The translations under genes and the position numbers were made by a program. From NCBI GenBank assembly GCA_965637545.1, contig OZ281494.1, forward strand, positions 22,878,001 to 22,942,000: 64,000 nt of DNA. The letters are read 5' to 3'. This document shows positions 6,401 to 63,495 of the stretch, piece after piece (position 1 is the stretch's first letter; each line of letters begins with the position of its first letter). The stretch comes from Phallusia mammillata (taxonomy: Eukaryota). The notes beneath the pieces were generated by a model. That model searched no databases. It was not told the origin of the DNA and saw only the letters and a list, made by a program, of their open reading frames with translations.

Positions 6401-9400
6401 CTCAAGGAGCGGAAAGTCAGGGAGGAGGAAAGAGAAAGAGCGGAAGAAGAGGAAAGAAAGCTGCGGGTGGAATATGAAGACCGAATTGCCCGTCTTCAAC
6501 AAGCTGTGCACAAACTGAAACAGGTGGAAATTACTGTTTTCACGTTTCACCGGTTTATATTTAGTTTACCAATTGCTTCGCTATCAATGCCATGCTAATT
6601 TTTGTTTAGTTTACACTTAAATTTAGGCGCAAAGTCTATACACTACAGCAAGGAGGGGTTTGGGAAAAAAGGGGTAAAATTACATGGGCCCCAGAAAAAG
6701 GCGCCCAATGGGTAAAACAGCTATTCTTAATAAATAAAATGCCTTTGCTTGGTTTGACCCAAAGTTGTCCTAAAAATGGATCTATCGAACTAAAGTTTGC
6801 AAAACGCGTACTGGTAATATTTCTTGAACAGTGCACAACCCGACCATTAGATGCAATGCGCGATGTTATGTAACATTTGCATATAATTTTAGGTGGATGA
6901 GCGATTGTCAAAAGTGAGTCCGCTCGAGAGCGAAGTGGAAAAACTGCGTGACAAACTTCGCACTATCACTGCGGTAAGACCATTGTTACGTCAATATCTT
7001 GCCATCTTCAGTATAATTTTCCATGGGAGGATACATCCTATTTGTAGCGAACGATTTTGTTGTCAAACTTTTTTTTGCTTAATTCTTTCTGTTCAGTGAG
7101 ATAATATTCGACTGGTACGTTTTGAGTATGATACAAAAGTATCAGTAGCGTAATGTAAATAGAAAATAAAATACCCTATTATATTATATATATAAGGATT
7201 ATAATAAAGGATTATAACTCAAATAAAGGATCATAACTCAAACTTACATTTTAACAGTGCATGTTTGGGTGTAAATATTGTTTCAAAACAAAAGAATCAC
7301 GTTGAATTTATGGCAGGAAAACGCAAGTCTCTCCTCGCGTTTAAACGAAGCCGAGACGCAAGGAGTTTTACTGAAAACGCAATTGGCAGCACTTCAAGTC
7401 GAATTACAAGAGAAAAGAATGATAGTGGATCGGTAGGTGGCGCTAAACTACACAAAAAAAGTTTTAATGCTGTGTATGGTCCGGCGCGCATGACCCATAT
7501 ACAGACATTAAAAAACCTGATCGGGATTCGTCCCCGTTAGTGTCCTGGGTTCAACTACATGTGCGAAAGAGAAAAAAATTCTTTACATTTACAAAATTTT
7601 AAATCGTTGCATTTATAAAAAAAAAGAACTACTATTTTGCTAAAACAACTGTTATACAGGATTGAACATGTTTTTCTGACGTTACAGCATTAAATACTTA
7701 CATATAATTTTTGTTGGGTATAAATTGTTTTCTGGTCATTTTTACGTTCGTATTCCCAGGGAAGTCCTGTTTTCTCTGAATCCGCCAAACTAATAATATA
7801 TACATTAAACTGACTATAGCTTATTCTCAACAACATGAAAACATTTTAAGCCCCATAAACCAATAAAAGTTTTGACAATCAGGCCTTACATCTCAGTGTA
7901 TACATTTCACACAATATCCATTGTTACTTCACAGAGAAAACGATGCCGTACGTCGGGTGTTAACTGAACAAGAGACGATGACGCGACAAGTTCACACATT
8001 GACGTAAGTTCTTCGCCTGTTTGCCAACTGCGTTCCGGCACGTTTATAAATGTTAATCCCTTTTTAGGGCGCCCAACACGAGTAGTGTCCCACATAGTCG
8101 TTTCTCGTTGCTAATTGCTTTGTATCGTTACAAACTCAAGACTTGGCGAGAAGTTCCAAATACGATTTATTCAGCGACCGACTCCCTCGTCGCCTTGACT
8201 TAATGTTAATGTTGCAATAACTCCGTACTCGGCAAATAAAAAACCTCTTACAGCGAGAACAGTTACAAATACTCGACGAAGCATGTAAGTTTGATTTCGG
8301 TGCCTCTAAAAATGGTGCTTTAGGAACCACAATCGAAAACTGCGGGACTCCAACGACGATTTGTTGGAAGTTTTGGAATCCAAGATGGCGGCCTACAAAC
8401 GGCTTTCCACGGAAATTCGGTCGCCCTCTGCCTCGTTGAACGGTGATTTTGCCTCCCTGTATTCCGCCACGCCGTCAAGGTTTGTGCTCTACTTATGACA
8501 CAGATTTCAAGACGTTGTATACATTAGAAGTTATTTGAAAGCAATGCCACTCACATTTTGATTTATAACGGTCTCTGCTGTTAGGTTTATAACAGTCATA
8601 ACATTTATATTCTGTACTGCGGATGTTTTACATTCTGCACTTATTTAGTACTGTATTTACTAATCTTGAGTTTTTGCCACTTTAATTTGTAAAAAAAACT
8701 TTACTCATTTTTTTGCAAAATTTGAATGAAAATGTTTGTTATCAAGGCTTGAATATCAGTTACAAAGTGGTCGTTCCTCTCGAGCCTCGTACGAGTCTGA
8801 AGCTCTTGCAATGTGCGACCCAAAACTCAGCTCAATTATATCTGAAGAAGATGACGTGAGCCATGATGATGACACCGAGGCAGATTATTCATTTAAATCA
8901 TCATTGGACGGCGGCATGGCCCTTGCCAGCAATGGCTTTGAACGAGACAGTGGAGTTGGCACAATTCGAGACGACCACGACACTGACACTGAAGTCGACG
9001 GTGGGCGGGTGTTTAGGCATCGATCCTTGGCCAATCGCTTGTCGGTTGGCCCAGTCTCGTCGGCAACTTCTCTGCGCAGTCCGAGTACCAAAAACATTGG
9101 ACGACATGACGTAATCGATGATGACGACACCGATGATGAAAATGATGACGACTTGGCGGAAGTACCGTCAGCAGAGAAGAGGAAGAGATTTGACCGACGG
9201 CGCGGTTCGTTGGAAAGAATGTCCAGGCGAAGGGTAAGTTATATGACATGCAACTTCATTATTTTGTGTTATTGTCATTGTATTTCAGATAACACCCACC
9301 CAGCCCCTAGTCAATGGTGAGCTGTACAAAATAATCCTGTGTGGGGATATGGGAGTTGGAAAATCAAGTTTTATTTTCAGAACTTGTAAAAATGAGTTTA

Positions 9401-10527
9401 ACCGACACACGAGATCAACGTTAGGTAAGTGCAAATGAAGCGAAACGTTTTGAAAAGGTTAAATAACAAAAATTCTGTAAGTTTTTTGTTGTTTATTTGT
9501 TCCACATTTGTGCAACTTTTTACAGGAGTTGATTTCCAGTCAAAAACTCTGATGTTGGATTCCCAGCAAGTGGTTACCCTTCAATTGTGGGACACCGCTG
9601 GCCAGGAACGGTTCCGAAGCATTGCAGCGTCATACTTCCGGAGGGCTGATGGCGTTATACTGCTCTATGACGTCACACAACAAGATTCTTTCCTCAACGT
9701 GAGGGATTGGATGGAAACTATAGCAGTAAGTTTTCGAATTTTTTTGTCAGTTATTTATATCACAGTAAACGAGGCAACCAACTTTATATGTGTAATTGGT
9801 CGTCTACAAGCTATCTGCGTTTGCTGTTTTGTCAATACATAATTTTGTGGGGTTTGAATTCAAAGCAACCCCGAACATGAATCCCTAACAGGTTTTTTAT
9901 GTTCGTAGGGTCAAGTGCTTGACACCTGTGTTAATTTTTGAATTTTAAAAATCACAGCATATTAATTAGTAAATCTTGCTGTTGAATGAAACTTATTAGT
10001 TTGCAACGTCCGTAATACATCGTGTACATTTGCTGCTACAGCATTCAGCACCTGAAGGGACACCCGTAATGATATGTGGAAATAAAGTTGATCTAAGAGA
10101 CGCAGGAACTAATGTGAAACGAGGTGCCGTATATCAGAAGGAAGGCGCACAATTAGCAGCGGTAAGTCACTTTATGGTAGTAAACTGTTTAAACCGAATC
10201 AAAAGAAACAAAAATTATGATGTTTTTTAATAATTTGCAAAATAAAACGTTTTCAAATGTTAAATTTATGCAAGAAATCGTGTACGATTCTTTTATAAAA
10301 TATAAATTTATCTGAAATATCTTATGTAACCTATTGTTTATCTGCAGAATTATGGGGTACTTTTTATGGAATGTAGCGCCGCAAGTGGACTAAACGTTCT
10401 CACCGCTGTAACGCGTCTGGCGCGTCACTTAGCGTCAAGAGTGCGACACCAAGTGGACAGTGGGTCTATCAAAGACTTAACAAACGTTGCGCCGAAAGTG
10501 GAGTCAAAGTGTTGTTTACGAAATTGA
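3499..10527 (+). CDS. RASEF: RASEF/RAB45 (coiled coil, linker and Rab GTPase domain); 5' exons not located
   Basis: Phase-consistent exons: 3499-3648, 6337-6523, 6893-6973, 7317-7432, 7935-8003, 8324-8479, 8747-9233, 9289-9424, 9526-9725, 10042-10161, 10348-10527. RASEF-like motifs: [40 protein letters not shown]. Rab motifs: [30 protein letters not shown]-terminal CCLRN prenylation motif. Confidence 0.93.
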
Positions 10528-37833: not shown

Positions 37834-38851
37834 AGTATAACATTTAAAAGATAGGCCTAAACATTGGGAATCAACCATTCTGTCCTGTCTCTTGATTGAT
37901 ACACAAAGACAGGGCTATATGTTGCCTTTTGGCGGACTTTTTTTCCCGCTGTAACCCGGAACCAAAAAACGGACATACGGGCACTTTAACACACATTGAA
38001 CAAATAAAAAACTTTGCATTTTTGTTGTGGTTAATTGCATTTTTGTTGTGTTTGCATGTCTTTTTTGGCGTTATCGTATTTGTATGTGTCGATTTGAAAA
38101 GGTGAACGGTACAAGTAAAATGTTTTGTTACATAAGTTTGGATCAAAATGCTTGCAAACCCAACCCCCATTACAGAACACCTGCAACAGCTTTTCAGATT
38201 TGTCACATTTTCTAAAATGTCCTTCCTTGAATTATTGCGGTAGAATATCTCTCTCTTCTAGTGACGTAACACATCTGTAAAGGTGGATGTAATCTCATGA
38301 AGCTATTACATTCTAAATCACGTCCATTGAAAATCATCGGCCAGTCAGAGATTAGGCCTGCCCCTTTACTCAAGCCAAATCGTATAAACCACCAGTAAAT
38401 AGTTAAGAGAAAACGGACATTTGCGTTTGTTCACTGACGCACATACCGCCTCAAGACAATTACCGATGTATGAAACAATCAATGAAAAATGCCTGGGCTA
38501 GCGTAGAAAAAAATAGTTTGGTTGTTGCGTACGGTAAGCTAGTAAGTACTACGTCATGATATTTGGCATTTCCGAAACATAAATGTTTTACAAAGATCAG
38601 GAATTTATTAAAATTGTAACAATTTTGACGTATTTCACTTGCGTAAACAATATTTGATGATTCAACGTTTAAATGACTGTGAATCATTGTGTTAAATTAA
38701 AATGTCGCTAATTAACTGTCAATCCGTCAGTAAGCGTTTCGAAAATTTTTTGGGTTTAACATCACAGTGTTCGTGGACTTCAACAATGCAGATGTTTTCA
38801 CTGGTACTTGGTCTACAATTTAGCAACATTAACTGAATTGATGTAGAATGG

Positions 38852-51523: not shown

Positions 51524-51737
51524 TATTAGAAGGAATGAACGTCCAACAAAACTATGTCATTATGCTCGAAATGATAATCCAGTTTGTCTTTGGGAAACGT
51601 AAGTTCGTTCGGTGCTTTCTGTAAGTATTGGCAATACACCTATAGCGTGTTGAGTAAAGGCAGTCAGAACATTTAGTTCCACTTGTTGGTGCCAGTAAGA
51701 AACAAGAAAACGGCAACACACGCCAAATAATTCTCAT
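51524..51737 (-). pseudogene. Truncated, frameshifted paralog of exon 1 of the LRR-Ig receptor (signal peptide, LRRNT, start of LRR1)
   Basis: Aligns to about 60580-60790 (shared CAGAAAGCACCGAAC, AAAGACAAACTGGATTATC, TTGGACGTTCATTC). A net +2 frameshift follows KCSDCL. An in-frame TAA sits at the MITE junction, and I see no homology beyond the MITE. Confidence 0.8.
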
Positions 51738-52787
51738 TTTGCAACGATTTGGCCACCTCAGCTATGAAATACAAAATATCTGCATTATTAGTCATACATC
51801 TCTGCTGGTCAATTAATGCTCGTACCTCCAGGTAAGTGCATATTACTATTAATATTGCCGACAGATCTGTAGCGGTCACGTGCTTTTAAACCATCATTTT
51901 GGCACTTTGGTTTGGCTAAGCATTAAGTAATGGAACATTTTAACTTTGCAACCATGACTTTTCGTTCCATGGAATTTATATGCTGCTTTTGCGACATATG
52001 GTATCGAACGGTGTAACTTTACTGTTCCATGTGTTCTCATGATTCAGTAACTATTGGAAGCACATATTCAGTGTCGTTGTTACATGTTCCCGTCTTCCTG
52101 ATATGTTCCAACAGCCAGACCATAAGACAGGCTGTTGCGTAAACCGGGTGTTTCGAAATAGTTGTGCAATCCATTGCAGTGCTGCATATCTTTGCAAGCG
52201 TTTAACTTAAAACAAACTAATAACTGATGTGAGTAAAAGAAGGTACTGTTTTGCAATGATCGCACGAAAAACGAGTATCAGTTTGAAAACCAATGTTTTA
52301 TCGTTGATCGCTTTTTTCCATCGTATCTTTTCCTTGAGATAAATGAGACTTGATGTGTGTTGCGTAACCAGAATAAAAGACAAGAACTAAATTGATCTTT
52401 TGTGGATCATGTCGGCTCTATGCAGCAAGCGTTAAGAATCGTAATAATGAACTTACTCGCTACTGCAGACGACCGATACGAGCCACGAGAAGCAGAAGAA
52501 ATAACGAGCCTTCAAGTAAACAATAACACAGCACGTGCGCACCCTCGCCCCCGCAGATCCAACGAAAATCGGGCCTAAGTATTGTTACATTAAAGTTCGT
52601 TTTATAATCCCAAAGTAACTTTAAAATAACATTTAAACAGCCCGTTAAGTGATAAAATTGTCACTTATCAAAAGTAAGTTTTTAGTTTAAATAAAATATT
52701 GGTATTAAATATCGTTTATTGATCGTTTTCCACCTAATAATTGGTATCGTTATGGGCCCTTAAGCAGTTATATTTTATATCCTACGA

Positions 52788-56090: not shown

Positions 56091-57071
56091 GTTTAAATTA
56101 TTTTTTTAGCGTTTGCAAATGATTCTGCAGTATACACCCTTTTCATATCGTATTTGTGCTGACGTAAACTATTGACGGTGTTTAAACCGGATTGTTTTGT
56201 TGTTGTTTTTTCTTTTTTTTCACATTATATTTAGTTTTAATTTGGGATAGTATCTTACAACTTGTGGCAATTTCTGCTCAGTGAAAATTATACTGCGAAA
56301 CTTGTTTGCAACCAAGCTCCACGAATGACGCGCCGTTGTGCTTTGTTAGCTATGCATAATATACCACTTGAGTGTTTTTCGATTTTATTGGCTAGGTGAT
56401 GTACCGAACCGTTTCAAAAGATTTCAACAGTTTAGAATTAACCGAATCAAATATTGTATGACGTTGCGCAAACCAGTGCGCCATGCAGCTTTTAATTTGA
56501 TCCCATTGGTTTTGCTGCAAATATTTGCGTTACTAAAACGTTGTAGTTGAGTTGCATTTTTACTTTAGATAAATGGATTTAAGGCTGTCTCGGCTGTTGT
56601 TGTCCACGTGCAATTGTTTTTCGGAGTAGTCAAAACGATAGTGCTTCAATGAACTCGTCAAGGCGATTTGTTAAAGCACTTGAGATTCTGTTGTACGTAA
56701 TTAGGCGAAAGGGGCAAGCTTTATGCCACAAAAACAAATATTGCTTTAGCAATGGTATTTAGAAACTCTGCTAAACAGATCGACAGACGACAGTTATCGA
56801 AAATAATAATCAGTCGAAAAACGCCAAATGTACAGAAACCGGTACAAATTAAGCTCTGAATAGCAAATTATTTACTTACCAGTTACCACACAAAACAGAT
56901 AAAACACTCCTAATGCGTCCATTACCAATGGATAAGAGTTCCAGTGCAACTGGTCTTAAGAATTGAAATAAATTTTCTGCAGTCAAAGTTGACATCGGGC
57001 ATTCAGGGTGGTTTTCCAAAATTTCCACCCACTCCTAATGAGTCGCCACAACCGGGTGATATAGTGTATGG

Positions 57072-57425
57072 CAGTGGTTCCCAACCTTTTGTGGACCGTG
57101 GCCCCCTAAAAGTAACTTTTGGGCTTCGTGGCCCCCCTCAAGTAACCCTGTAGGACCTGTGCCCCCCCTAAAAATGTAAATGGCAATCTCGTGTTGAAAT
57201 TTGGTACTAATTCAGGCTTTAAACAGGTCCAATAGCGTAAATAAGAATCTGTAATTGTGAAAACCTCTACACAAATAGTATGTGAAATAGTCGATTAAAT
57301 TAGGGAATAATGTTAAAAAGAAAATGGCTTTTAGTGGGTGTTTCTGGTGAATCTACACCCGTGGCCCCCCAGAACACAGCTCGTGGCCCCCCTGGGGGGC
57401 CATGGGCCCTGGTTGGGAACCACTG
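57072..57425. mobile_element. hAT-type MITE
   Basis: Ends CAGTGGTTCCCAACC / GGTTGGGAACCACTG; exact TSD GTGTATGG. Confidence 0.88.
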
Positions 57426-58094
57426 GTGTATGGTGTGGTCGGTTTTAAAATGTAAAAAGTGAAGGTGTATGTAAAACCGGTGTAGCAAGTAGGATCAAAG
57501 TTCAGCAATCTATTACGTCTTTAATTTTCAGAAACAAACACAATTAAGCAGAGTTTGTCGCCGTAAGGAAACGGATTATAATAAAACCCTTACAAAAATT
57601 TGGACAATAACTTAGTAGTAGCCCTATTGTAACGGTGTTCCATGATGAGGCCACATCAAACCGATCAAAATCATAAACGCTTGCTGTTCCGTTAAAATAC
57701 GAATAGACGAAGACACATTGAACAAAAGGTGAAAAAAGATCGTCAGAAGAATAAAAAAGCAATACCAAAACTGACTGTGCATGAGTTGGATCGAAGCAAA
57801 ATATACAAACATTTTAATAAGCGACTGGTTGATGGGTACGCACAATACTTGCATGATACATTAATTGTGTTGTTCTAAAAAATGATACTTACTAAACTTA
57901 AACCATGCAATTTTCATAAGTGCACTTTTCGCGTACCTGGAATAATAAAACAACCCAACAAAATGCCGGCAGAGAAAGGTTCATCGTGTACAGTTGGCGC
58001 GATCATAAAAAAACAGCACAAAGAATTTCTAGAATTCAGATACAGCACTTAAAGGGCAATTTGAAAAATTCTGAATCATGGAGCATCTGATGGC

Positions 58095-60790
58095 TCAAAC
58101 CAAAACCTCCTTATCATCGCCTTTTGAATAAACCTCCTCATCAGAAAACAGGTGTTCCTCCTCCAAGGGTGTGGCTTGTGTCTGATACTCAGGAACCTTT
58201 GATTCATCTAGTTCATAGTAAGCTGCACCGCCTCCAGTGTTTTCCAAGGACCCGTAACCATCTCTTGATTTCTGCCTTCTCCAAAAACAAGAAGCTACTC
58301 CGATGACAAAGATTACGGACAGCAGGATTGCAAGTATTGTACCTGTGATGTTGAACAAGTTTTAGCATCCTGGTGCAAATCCCACCAATAGTACAAAAAA
58401 TTGTTCGTTTTGTTTTAACCACCAGTGTGAAACGAAATAACAACATGTTATAATTCAAAGCATTTGATTTAAACAATTTTACCGACCGACGCTGACGGGG
58501 CGTTTGGAGGACGAATCGATGCGAAGATTAATAGTTTTGTTCACCACCAGATCGTGTCCTTTGTTATCTGTTCCTACCATCATGCATTTATATTTTCCAA
58601 GCTGATCACGAGTCACTTCCTTGATCTCGAAACACACGTGGCCTGATGATGTAACATAAGAGGTCATAAAAGGGTCGAAAAACAAAAAGTTCTCGGGGTC
58701 TACAAACCCACGAAAAATGAGTTTCGCGTTTCAAAAACTACCGAGAATGAAAATAACGGAGGTCAGTTAACACGATTTTACTTTAAACTGACTTTCGTTT
58801 TGGACAAACAGGTTGGTTGAAATAGTTGTTAATATAATCTCCAGTATAAGCAGTTAAGTTTTAACCCAAATTCTAAACGAACATGTTTTCGTGTAATTTT
58901 TAAAAAAAGCAAAAAAAAATACTAAACGATTACATAGCGAACTTAAATTGATATGATACCTATGCCTGTGATCAAAGTTTGTTGGACTTCGTTGAACAAA
59001 GTAAGATGGGGAATCGGCATTCCATGGCCGGAACAAGTAAGGTTGACGTTTCCACCTTCCACAGCATCGACATTGATTGAAACGGCAGACGAATTTAATG
59101 GAAAGTTAAAGAAGGCTTTTCGGCAAACTAGATCGTGTTTTGTCTTGTCTGTTAGTGCAGTTTTTCGCCCATCTGGACCAGGGCACATCGGTAAACTTAA
59201 ACTGCAAACAGACAAAGTGAAAAAAATTGAGGGTTATTTGATGTTTGTTGCAGGTATCGTTTAATCCCATTGTACGTAGGTACGATGGTTTACCTGGTTA
59301 AAGTCAAATAACAAAACAGATACGAACTTTCATCAAGTCAACACTTTCTATTTCCCTAACACCAATTAATTAATATTTGCTACCTTCTTAAATCAGCATT
59401 TATGACAATTTAAGTCAGTCCGGAGTCCTGAGTTCGGACTTCTGAGCAGTGCAGTTTTGATGAAGGCATTTTCATTGCGTCATGTTTGTTAGTTTGGGTA
59501 TAATAAGTCATATTTAAAACCCTTCATTTTTTGAAACCCTTCATTTAGTAAATACCAGCACTAAGGTTCTTATCCATTAATAGTTCGTGTCCCCCTGCTC
59601 ACCAAAAATAGAAGAATTTTGAGCATTTCGAAGGTTAAAAGGTTTAATGAAGAATAACATTTAAAAAAAATCACAACGAACAAAAACAAGAAGATAAAAA
59701 TGGCTTTACTTTCATTAAACTAGTGGCTATATCTAACTGATCTTCAAATGAATATAAAAGACAACTTACTGGCTATTCCGTACAACACTAAGTCGTTGTT
59801 TGTGAGATGTCACGCTGTGGACAAACGGCCACATTCTGCAGTCACATGACCATCTGTTTGCATCAAGCTCAATCTCTGAAGTGGCACTGAGACTCATGTT
59901 TGCAATCCACGTCCTGTGAAACACAGGAATGGTCCAGTTTAGAAATGCTAAGTAAAGATTCGACTATAAAGGTAATTCCGCATAGCACCAAAAAGATATT
60001 TGTACTGTTTTTGTCAACTGAGCTCAATCGTATGGACGATCTGAAATTCTTGCTATCATCACCATTAAAAAAAAATAAACGACGCAAGTTCTGTTTTTGT
60101 CAAAACAGAAACATTTTCATTCCACCTACGTACGAGCTAATTGTAACCAATTATAAACGAAATTTGAACTACAAATCATCAGAAATAAACTAAGCAAGGC
60201 AAGAGAGAACAAACAAAACAATAAAACACTTACCAGTACGCAGTCTCCAGAAGATTTTCTTCCAAATACAACGTGGATAGAGCATTCGCGGTGCTAAATG
60301 CCATTGGGTGTACAGCAACCAATCGATTGTTGGCCAAACGAAGTTGTGTTAGTTTAGGTAAGTTGGCAAACACATACTGATCAATGTGAGTAATTTGGTT
60401 GTCGCTACAGTAGAATTCTTGAAGATTTGGCGTTTTGCTAAAAAGATTCGAAGGCAAGTTTGTAAGGTTATTGTTGTTTAAATATACTGCATGTAGATCT
60501 GGGTTTTTGTAAAATGTTTTTCCAGGTATTTTTGTGAGACTGTTGTTGGTAAGATATATCCACTGCATGTTTGTAAGAAGATAGAAAGAATGAACGTCCA
60601 ACGAAACTAAGCCATTATGTTCGAAGCGATAATCCAGTTTGTCTTTCGGAAACGTAAGTTGGTTCGGTGCTTTCTGCAGGTTTCCACAATCAACTTCGCG
60701 TGATTTGCATAAGCAATCAGAGCATTTTTGTTTGCTTGCTAATGCCAGTACGAAATAAGAAAACGCTAACACGCACCAACAAATTCTCAT
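58095..60790 (-). CDS. LRR-Ig single-pass receptor (signal peptide, LRRNT, about six 24-aa LRRs, LRRCT, Ig, TM, ITAM-like tail); about 448 aa
   Basis: Phase-consistent exons: 60790-60234, 59913-59770, 59201-58960, 58642-58487, 58342-58095. Signal peptide MRICWCVLAFSYFVLALA; LRRNT CSDCLCKSREVDC; LRR cores such as LHAVYLNNNNL; LRRCT NRWSCDC...C; Ig VEGGNVNLTC...DQLGKYKC; TM ILAILLSVIFVIGVASCFW; tail YGSL-x8-YYEL. Confidence 0.85.
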
Positions 60791-63495
60791 TTTGCAGCAA
60801 CTTGTTTCAAGGTTAGGAAAAGCCTTTGGAATAAAAAATGTTAAAAGTGTACATCTGGCTGAAAAAATACGACGCAGAAAATATCTGCACAATAAAAGTA
60901 AGGGGACCCACAACAAGTAAACCGTTAAAACGTTACAAGCCGTGCTAAACATACTATTCATTACCCATTTTCAGCTTGAACCCAATAATTTTATGACATA
61001 TTTGCTTTATCAAGCAAAACCATGTTCGTCGAACACCATTCATTTAAGAAGCCTGAGCAAGTATAAATCAGGTCTATTGCATGGCAGCAAGGCGTTCATG
61101 CGTGAAATACACTGTGTCGGCGCAATCACAAACCTGTCTTTACCCCCTAAGAGTCTCGAATACGGTGGCTGGGACAGAACCGTTCGCAAATATGTGGAGA
61201 TGAGCCGATCTGGTTTAAATTCTTATATTTCAATAATTGTTCAAATTTTAGCAAGTTTTAATGCACAACTACAGAAAACTATTTATCATGCGTGTCAAAG
61301 GGAAAAAATAAACCAAGCAAACCCGTAAACGTCTTTCATTTATATTTTAACAGCTTTATTCAAACCTTCACTTGGCTGTAATGGATTGCACTAAAAAGGC
61401 ATTGAAACTATCTAGCAAACCAGTTTTTAAAATAATGCACAAAAGTTAAAAATTAAACATCAAGGGTTGACAATCTTTTGTGGCGAACGCCAAAATCCCT
61501 ACTTAGTCTGAAGTCTGAACTAAACACTCGCACAGGGTTGTACTTAACGACTTTCGTCATTTTTTGTCAAATGTTTAGTGACTTTACTTCGCTACTTATT
61601 CTTGATATCGCCTGTTTCATCACAATTCATTACCACCATTGCAATAGTCTACGTTTTTGCATCAGACCACAACTTGACCACCAATAATTTACAGCTTTAT
61701 TAGTTTATTGACGTCACAATGACTTGGAATTCAGACTGCTCGAACCACCCCGAGGGAATCGCTAGACAAAACATTACGACGAAATACAAGGCTTCTTTTG
61801 CCTGAAACAATAGGTTGTTAATTTGTAGTCTATTGTTGTGAAACAACATTTTTAAAACGCTTCATAGTTTACAGTAGTTTCAAGGTCCACATCTCTTTGC
61901 TGGTTAAATAGCCGTTGTGTGCAAATACATTGCAAATATCTATTTTTAAACTGGTTTGATAACCTCTTAACGGTAGTAATACCAACGTACAAGTATACCC
62001 AACAACACACTTAAGGCCTTACTAGAAAGGCTTTCTGCCTCGCTTGAAAGGCTTTTTGTAAACTGACTTCCTGCTTTCAGCCCCAAGGTGCTAAAAATGA
62101 CGTCAAAAATACACCAGGTTTGTTAAAAACCTATTGGGAAACTCTGCGTCCCAACCTGATTAAGCACCATGAAGCCAAATTTTTTCCTTTCTTAATCTGG
62201 TGTAATCTGTCTGTGCAAACATCTGAATAAGCTCACCAAACCGCAATGTCTGCTGTTAATAGAAATGCCTCCTAAAAATAATCAATGTTATATAGTGCCA
62301 AGCCAATATATCTCAAATCAAATCTGCTTGCTATAGCTTAACCGTGTAAATCCACAACAAGGAGAAATTAAGAGGTTATTTTATGTCGCTGGTATAAGAA
62401 AATGGTCTCCTAACAATTGCCCAGGGCTAACGGAAGGTTGGTGTCTCGTTCGCAACTTAGTTTGGTCAATGACGCGCCGATACGCTTGGCTAGCCACGTG
62501 TAACGTAACACAAGGTTGGTTTTGCAGTTTCAGCAAATCCGCTGGAGGTTTAGTTCGCATTTAATCCCTTAAAATGATGTTTTTACCTCCATTGGTTACC
62601 TTTTGGCCGCGCACTGTTCGTACCAGTAAACAATGTTTGATTTCTCCGTTTTGGGAAATATTTGTCGTTTAAAAAACGGTTAACACTTTTGCCGTGAAAC
62701 TTAAGTTACGTTGGTGGTTATCTTGGCAACGCAAATTCATTGCCTGTTCTAGTTCTTTTTTAATCAAAACCTTAATGATAGTTTTACCGCAAATTGTCTG
62801 TTAAGTATCCGGATCGGCAGTCAATTATTGCCAGAGGCGCTCAATATCAATAGCCGAAAAATGTTAAGTGCGTCGAAGCTATCACATATTACGGCCACCT
62901 GATGAGCAGTCATGTGTTTACCACACGAAACAGTAACTCATAGATAGTCAACTGATGCAACTGTATTAATGTGATTTTTCCTAGCAGGTTATTTTTACGT
63001 GTCTGCTTGCCAAAACGCTTTATTTTCATTTAAAACTTATTACTGGAATGTTTCTGTCATATACATCAAAAATGACTTAGTTTGTGCCCACTGGTGGGTA
63101 TTAAAACAAATGACCAATGACATAAACTTGCTAAATGGTTTTATTTTACACAATCACCTGAATTTGTATTTTACTAAATCAAAAAATGTAAATATCCGCT
63201 ATTCAAATCAAAAAAATCACTTATTAATCTAAAAAAAAACACTTGTATAACTCGCTTTACCAATAGACTTTTTCAAAAGCAATGTTTTGTAATGCTTTGA
63301 AAAACATCAATAGTTATTGTCCACAAGACCCAGAAACAGCAACTAAAAATGAAAACAATAGCACAATAACATTACATTAAGTTTTACACTTCAATATTGT
63401 TTTTTTTTCGTTTTTTTTTAAGAGCAGCACTTGTCTCATGGAAATCTAGTAGTATTCCAAAATTGAACTTCTTCCTATAGTATGCAATTTGAGTT

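Follow-up and report, generated by a model that had tools for sequence, protein, structure and literature searches.

An LRR-Ig membrane protein of the ascidian Phallusia mammillata with an ITAM-consensus stretch in its own cytoplasmic tail

Introduction

The gene analyzed here lies at positions 60790-58095 on the minus strand of a stretch of 64,000 nucleotides from the genome of the ascidian Phallusia mammillata (contig OZ281494.1, positions 22,878,001 to 22,942,000); this whole stretch is called the window in the following, and all positions refer to it. The gene encodes a membrane protein with leucine-rich repeats (LRRs) and one immunoglobulin (Ig) domain outside the cell, and with a stretch in its cytoplasmic tail which matches the consensus for ITAMs (immunoreceptor tyrosine-based activation motifs). 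We consider it probable that the protein is a cell-surface adhesion molecule or co-receptor of the AMIGO/LRRC24 type and that the fit of its tail to the ITAM consensus is coincidental.

A first-pass annotation, made from the letters of the window, had interpreted the protein as a self-contained activating immune or allorecognition receptor. The structural part of that interpretation holds: LRRNT cap, six LRRs of 24 amino acids, LRRCT cap, Ig domain, transmembrane helix and ITAM-pattern tail are found in one chain of an invertebrate chordate. The functional part fares worse. The one thing that speaks for it is the pattern match, and the gene is single-copy, nearly invariant and AMIGO/LRRC24-like, with tail motifs which also fit another consensus, YxxΦ (where Φ is a hydrophobic residue). 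An immune or allorecognition function is thus less likely than a role as an adhesion molecule or co-receptor of the AMIGO/LRRC24 type.

Gene structure and splicing

When the open reading frame segments are joined at GT..AG sites the region gives five exons, a coding sequence of 1347 nt and a protein of 448 amino acids. The features of the gene are the following.

60824-60825, minus strand: AG acceptor for trans-splicing, at the loose end of the X3 contig at 60826
60823-60791, minus strand: mature 5' untranslated region, 33 nt, counted from the spliced-leader joint
60234-60790, minus strand: exon 1, coding from ATG 60790; signal peptide, LRRNT, LRR1-LRR5 and the greater part of LRR6 (LRR_8, 1.5e-25)
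60790-60734, minus strand: signal peptide, residues 1-19, hydrophobic
60727-60641, minus strand: LRRNT cap with the pattern Cx2CxCx6C (C23-x2-C26-x-C28-x6-C35)
59770-59913, minus strand: exon 2, LRR6 end and LRRCT first half (RWSCDC), bounded by transcript-contig joints
58960-59201, minus strand: exon 3, LRRCT remainder (CPGP...LVC), then Ig domain first half (NLTCSG, C290)
58487-58642, minus strand: exon 4, Ig domain second half (DQLGKYKC, C334), then a short stalk; donor G/GTCGGT
58095-58342, minus strand: coding part of exon 5, transmembrane helix, cytoplasmic tail and stop codon (58097-58095)
58340-58281, minus strand: transmembrane helix, residues 368-387, a hydrophobic segment of 20 residues
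58280-58098, minus strand: cytoplasmic tail, 61 amino acids
58209-58256, minus strand: ITAM-consensus stretch YGSL-ENTGGGAA-YYEL, Y396-L411, 16 residues, mapped exactly; both halves also fit YxxΦ
58098-58109, minus strand: C-terminus EVLV, a candidate class II (Φ-x-Φ) PDZ ligand judged by its pattern
57413-58094, minus strand: 3' untranslated region; transcript contigs extend to at least ~57413, and the X17 record runs 287 letters past 57700

The introns were tested with contigs from four public runs belonging to four studies, which were aligned to 57700-61000 with one spliced record per run. The joints in these contigs are found at 58340/58485 (cut +2), 58641/58959 (cut +1), 59201/59770 and 59912/60233 (cut +1), which are exactly the four predicted introns, and each intron is base-exact in 4/4 runs; the intron ends are GT..AG when read along the minus strand and appear as CT..AC on the plus strand. 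The junction between exons 4 and 5 was the one which the first-pass annotation wanted to see confirmed by cDNA. Its acceptor is forced because a stop codon sits directly upstream in the frame of the transmembrane segment, and acceptor and phase together therefore call for the weak donor G/GTCGGT; the spliced contigs of the four studies support this junction, weak donor included. With the four introns verified by transcript contigs the exon for transmembrane helix and tail is read in the frame originally proposed.

The mRNA begins with a spliced leader. The contig X3 ends at 60826 with 20 unmatched letters, the reverse complement of which is GTACGGG-ATTCTATTTGAAT; together with AAG, the three bases that come next in the genome, ATTCTATTTGAAT makes up a leader of 16 nt joined at 60824/60823. 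The GTACGGG in front of the leader resembles the end of a template-switch oligonucleotide; if it is one the X3 record is a cDNA. In Ciona the 16-nt spliced leader is ATTCTATTTGAATAAG (PMC1488885). The LRR-Ig mRNA is thus trans-spliced to the leader at the AG at 60825-60824, and because the leader joins at 60824/60823 ATG 60790 is the first start codon. An upstream in-frame ATG at 60961 was considered as start codon and rejected, as it sits in the outron which trans-splicing removes.

A second contig, X17, has lost all four introns by cis-splicing yet retains the outron past the trans-splice acceptor, beyond 61000, and its upstream region is probably unprocessed outron. Unprocessed or non-trans-spliced RNA is thus present alongside the trans-spliced form. 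In RNA of the X17 type ATG 60961 would add 57 codons with a hydrophobic stretch of their own, which may give an alternative N-terminus. At the other end of the gene the transcript contigs stop between ~57413 and 57584. The canonical AATAAA was not found on the gene strand from 56384 to 61355, and the gene has either a variant poly(A) signal or one located further downstream. There are no N letters in the window.

The gene is expressed. Among the 20 runs listed 18 carry 0.43-0.47 of the sampled words, which corresponds to the exonic share (1347/2696 bases), and the remaining two, both from 2024, carry 0.81-0.91 and are presumably genomic. The spliced mRNA is found in every RNA-like run listed, in four or five studies whose sample identities are coded.

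The deposited protein and sequence variation

An exhaustive HMMER search with exon 1 recovered a deposited Phallusia mammillata cDNA product (UniProt A0A6F9DKP8 / CAB3263485.1) which, like the model, has 448 amino acids and differs from it only at P97A and H430N. The record carries the automatic name 'leucine-rich repeat and fibronectin type-III domain-containing protein 3' (LRFN3). This name is wrong because the FN3 domain is absent.

The two differences do not affect the YxxL motifs. H430N corresponds to 58154 G>T and is seen in 2/4 RNA assemblies, where it is the sole difference among the RNA contigs; P97A (60502-60500) is absent from the four RNA assemblies. Over six sources (the reference, the cDNA clone and the four RNA assemblies) the protein thus shows two amino-acid differences, and over the ~1.9 kb mRNA the four RNA assemblies of four studies show one nucleotide difference.

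The protein

The ectodomain contains six LRRs in an exact 24-residue register (residues 51-194; Pfam LRR_8 2.5e-24 in the protein), and the cysteine patterns of both LRRNT and LRRCT (RWSCDC...CPGP...LVC) are present. The Ig domain is of the I/C2 type, covers approximately residues 270-355 and has the pattern C290...DxGxYxC334 (DQLGKYKC). Pfam Ig_3 gives 1.4e-5, slightly under the Pfam cut-off, and against solved structures the Ig region scores in the range 8e-8 to 5e-5, with MAG (8.4e-8) and IgLON5 (2.7e-5) among the matches. The stalk between Ig domain and transmembrane helix is ~12 residues, and a Pfam scan of the protein gave no fn3 match. A capped extracellular LRR block, an Ig domain as the only other ectodomain module and a transmembrane helix are features of the LRR_Ig/FN3 class, and all are present.

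The ectodomain carries six N-x-S/T sites and the rest of the chain none, and the transmembrane helix is followed by RRQKSR. Judged from the signal peptide, the glycosylation sites, the helix and RRQKSR the protein appears to be a type I membrane glycoprotein with the ITAM-like stretch on the cytoplasmic side. The tail of 61 residues contains 15 acidic residues and 5 tyrosines, and the first tyrosine of the ITAM pattern comes only 8 residues past the hydrophobic transmembrane segment. A single-sequence AlphaFold2 model is poor (mean predicted local distance difference test, pLDDT, of 41); it shows a helix at 366-394 and a pLDDT <50 over nearly all of 393-448, and on this basis the tail is predicted to be disordered.

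Relatives

The exact sequence is contained in the ESM Atlas. When the language-model features of the Atlas are compared, the ten best named clusters are nine clusters of AMIGO1/2/3 and one generic Ig-like-domain cluster (0.96-0.97); they have 205-214 of 256 features in common with the Phallusia protein and lengths of 445-739 amino acids. The best neighbour by predicted structure in the Atlas is LRRC24 (TM-score 0.63 by query, residues 8-362), followed by LINGO and LRFN. A sequence search against PDB chains gave LRRC15, LRIG1, LGR4, ALS (the acid-labile subunit of the IGF-binding protein), LRRTM and the Nogo receptors as best matches, and a phmmer search with the LRRCT-Ig segment against PDB chains favoured no LRR-Ig family. 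Variable lymphocyte receptors (VLRs) scored lower than the best PDB matches. The earlier description of the solenoid as VLR-like holds in a generic sense only, since LRRC15, LRIG1, LGR4 and the Nogo receptor outscore the VLRs.

Three families call for a direct comparison. AMIGO1-3 have an LRRNT, six LRRs, an LRRCT, one Ig domain, a transmembrane segment and a short tail in 445-521 amino acids, and the architecture of the Phallusia protein matches this exactly; descent from the AMIGO family is unproven. Plain sequence searches give no specific AMIGO signal, and no AMIGO chain is among the PDB matches listed. We know of no AMIGO tail which acts as an ITAM. LRRC24, which by structure ranks first among the neighbours of the Atlas model, likewise has an LRR block, a single Ig domain and a transmembrane helix. 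LRRC24 and the Kekkons differ in being longer (~600-770 amino acids in the listed clusters), with longer tails, and the TM-score calculated by target is only 0.32-0.48. LRFN3/SALM4 shares the LRR block, Ig domain and single transmembrane helix, but its defining FN3 domain is missing from the Phallusia protein. Dolan et al. place AMIGO, LRRC24, LINGO and LRFN in the LRR_Ig/FN3 class, the members of which are mostly membrane-bound and expressed in the nervous system, and they consider LRRC24 to be the closest mammalian relative of the Drosophila Kekkons (PMC2235866). Most LRR_Ig proteins are adhesion molecules of the nervous system or co-receptors (PMC2235866).

Orthologs were sought in several ways. 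A word-index search with the tail gave no candidate sharing words with it, and the same kind of search with exon 1 gave none at E ≤ 0.001. A full-length search with A0A6F9DKP8 gave 10 matches besides its own record, all in the LRR region with a coverage of <=41%; they came from amphioxus, insects and other assemblies, and their C-termini held no relatives of the Ig domain, transmembrane segment and tail. The 150 matches listed from the exhaustive HMMER search with exon 1 were LRR proteins of several thousand residues, and the only useful match was the protein itself; such giant proteins fill the list because their summed scores outrank those of single-domain orthologs. When the C-terminal half was re-scored locally against 160 retrieved proteins nothing was found beyond the LRRs, and an apparent long match to one of the retrieved proteins (P0018) was rejected as spurious beyond the LRRs. 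A metagenome scan found no relative, a contig look-up with the exact sequence had nothing on record, and the supplements of the Phallusia single-cell atlas paper have no entry for the gene. Our literature search found no ascidian LRR-Ig/ITAM protein and no ascidian homolog of LRRC24 or AMIGO. It should be noted that the Phallusia and Ciona genomes are highly diverged (10.1101/371005), and blank word-based searches say little for that reason. What can be taken from the blanks is, at most, that a close relative with a tail like this one is not readily found.

The ITAM-like motif

In the spliced model the tail reads RRQKSRDG-YGSL-ENTGGGAA-YYEL-DE, as in the first-pass annotation, with YGSL to YYEL at 58256-58209. 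The YGSL-x8-YYEL at residues 396-411 matches YxxL/I-x6-8-YxxL/I with a spacer of 8 residues, and the further motifs which had been pointed out, EYQT, EVYS and the terminal EVLV, are present as well.

How often the pattern arises was estimated in three ways, of which the first is shuffling of the tail. The pattern Y..[LI].{6,8}Y..[LI] occurs in 0.43% of 200,000 shuffles, and in 0.96% when the spacer may be 6-12. In 159 unrelated LRR proteins, 475,068 residues in total, there are 5 occurrences, and the expectation under ordinary amino-acid frequencies is ~6e-5 per start position. The pattern is uncommon in any one tail, yet several chance matches should be expected over all receptor tails in a genome of ~15,000 genes.

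Other readings of the same residues were considered. YxxΦ is the consensus for AP-2-mediated sorting, and YGSL and YYEL each fit it equally well. An immunoreceptor tyrosine-based inhibitory motif (ITIM) was rejected as the tail has no (S/I/V/L)xYxx(L/V/I), and a Grb2 site was rejected as it has no YxN. The sequence EYQTQ fits YxxQ as a pattern match only.

Receptors which carry an ITAM in their own chain have been described before, and the emphasis originally put on this arrangement as unusual was overstated: the Halocynthia glycoprotein, the Hydractinia Alr proteins and the oyster Ig receptors discussed below all precede the Phallusia protein. Drosophila Draper and human FcγRIIA also have the ITAM in the receptor's own chain. 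The ascidian case is a haemocyte glycoprotein of Halocynthia roretzi (Takahashi et al., 1997, as cited in PMC5465252), which is described as having two ITAMs in its own tail, as being tyrosine-phosphorylated and as working in haemocyte aggregation and phagocytosis. It resembles the Phallusia protein in being an ascidian membrane protein with ITAMs in its own tail, and by its example ascidians already possess ITAM receptors that need no adaptor chain of their own. Oyster Ig receptors with ITAMs are reported to signal through Syk (cited in PMC13344425). The amphioxus BbLcLRR is an LRR receptor of an invertebrate chordate with tail tyrosines for SH2-based signalling; it differs in that its motifs are ITIM or ITIM-like, inhibitory, and recruit SHIP1 and SHP, for which there is experimental support (PMC8211107). 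Hydractinia Alr1/Alr2 combine an Ig-like ectodomain with ITAM or ITAM-like motifs in one chain (10.1101/2022.03.25.485889), but they are highly polymorphic, clustered and without LRRs, whereas the Phallusia gene is single-copy and nearly invariant.

Genomic context

Searches with the gene by tblastn and blastn found no paralogs or tandem family within the 64-kb window, nor is there a receptor cluster. Single copy, absence of a receptor cluster and very low variation argue against a locus for allorecognition and also, though weakly, against an immune receptor that diversifies.

The sole related copy in the window is a segment of 225 bp at 51527-51751, about 9 kb downstream of the LRR-Ig gene, which is 79% identical, in the same orientation and frame-shifted. 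It copies the start of exon 1 (60582-60804), that is signal peptide, LRRNT and LRR1, and no further exons are found beside it; it is a pseudo-exon or partial duplicate. A segment at 38018-38212 on the plus strand shows 27% identity over 66 residues to the exon for transmembrane helix and tail (E 6e-4 within the window) with no similarity at the DNA level, and this is probably noise from the hydrophobic segment.

The other genes in the window include two at its far end, which do not give the gene immune-like surroundings. A tetraspanin is encoded by a single uninterrupted open reading frame at 9-662 on the plus strand, at the window edge (Pfam 3.3e-44). About 9 kb past it, at 9429-9842 on the plus strand, an exon encodes part of a GTPase of the Ras/Rab type (4.3e-22); ahead of this exon, at 8736-9320, is an open reading frame rich in acidic residues and serine.

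Models for the function of the protein

In the explanation which we prefer, an adhesion molecule or co-receptor of the AMIGO/LRRC24 type, a partner, whether in trans or in cis, would be contacted by LRR arc and Ig domain, and the short tail would offer sites for docking. As YxxΦ signals YGSL and YYEL may recruit the clathrin adaptor AP-2 for sorting as long as they are unphosphorylated, and SH2 proteins once they are phosphorylated; a PDZ scaffold may dock on the terminal EVLV. That the tail fits the ITAM exactly would then be a by-product of its being acidic, rich in tyrosine and furnished with leucines; it would hold no dedicated Syk-recruiting module, and the protein would be neither an immune nor an allorecognition receptor.

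Several observations weigh against this explanation. The likeness to AMIGO and LRRC24 comes from embedding and predicted-structure searches, and phmmer against solved structures favours no LRR-Ig family. The tail is unusually rich in tyrosine (5/61) and in acidic residues (15/61), its spacer of 8 lies inside the strict ITAM window, and such a match is reached in 0.4% of shuffles. An Asp two residues ahead of the first tyrosine is common in ITAMs and is found here. The tissues of the RNA runs are coded, which leaves room for expression in haemocytes. Finally, the Syk kinase of Ciona is listed as XP_002123000.1 (PMC13344425), so a downstream partner exists in ascidians.

A second model is that the ITAM works and the chain is a self-contained activating receptor. 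It hypothesizes that a Src-family kinase phosphorylates Y396 and Y408 after binding of a ligand, that the tandem SH2 domains of ascidian Syk dock on the two phosphotyrosines, and that haemocytes are activated. We regard this as unlikely. The exact match to YxxL-x8-YxxL and the tyrosine- and acid-rich tail, predicted to be disordered, are what the model would expect, and so is a Syk in Ciona (PMC13344425). It also has precedents: within ascidians the Halocynthia haemocyte glycoprotein with its two ITAMs (cited in PMC5465252), further away the oyster Ig receptors reported to signal through Syk (cited in PMC13344425), and for LRR receptors the amphioxus protein, which uses tyrosines of the ITIM type (PMC8211107). 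At variance with the model are the searches by tail, exon 1, full-length protein and metagenome, which found no ortholog, the position of the first tyrosine just 8 residues past the hydrophobic transmembrane segment, and the single-copy, nearly invariant state of the gene. Moreover, the nearest look-alikes are adhesion families which are not immune, and when a whole genome is read some tails should fit such a pattern by chance.

A third model makes the protein a synaptic or neuronal organiser in the manner of LRFN/SALM or NGL, with trans-synaptic binding by the ectodomain and a C-terminal PDZ ligand; we find this improbable. It is the model suggested by the LRFN3 name of the source record, and LRFN clusters are among the structural neighbours, the Ig domain is nearest to the neural adhesion proteins MAG and IgLON5, and EVLV appears to fit Φ-x-Φ. 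The ectodomain is nevertheless the wrong one, as only ~12 residues separate the Ig domain from the transmembrane helix and Pfam finds no fn3, and the C-terminus departs from the class I S/T-x-V ending of LRFN1/2/4.

That a polymorphic LRR-Ig ectodomain discriminates tissue or gametes of the same species and signals through the tail, as an allorecognition determinant would, is extremely improbable: Phallusia lives solitarily, the gene varies very little (one nucleotide in ~1.9 kb of mRNA and two amino acids relative to the cDNA), there is no paralog cluster in the window, and all that can be put on the other side is the analogy to the Ig-like ectodomains and ITAM-like tails of Hydractinia Alr (10.1101/2022.03.25.485889).

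Implications

What the analysis gives as it stands is a verified gene model, including the trans-splice site and the start codon, and the correction of a misleading LRFN name. It also carries a caution, namely that matches to the ITAM pattern in tyrosine-rich tails of ascidian receptors need evidence from conservation or biochemistry before an immune reading is put on them. An LRR-Ig ectodomain together with a canonical ITAM would be a new combination, a variant of known themes and not a new type of system.

There is a slender chance that the tail is a working ITAM after all, and the protein would then be the first described chordate receptor to unite Slit/VLR-class LRRs, an Ig domain and a Syk-recruiting ITAM in one chain. 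If so, an adhesion scaffold of the AMIGO type would have been co-opted for activating signalling in ascidian blood cells, and LRR-based recognition would be coupled to ITAM signalling in the sister group of the vertebrates. Such a finding would be relevant to the question of how, before there was adaptive immunity, the signalling of immunoreceptors was put together.

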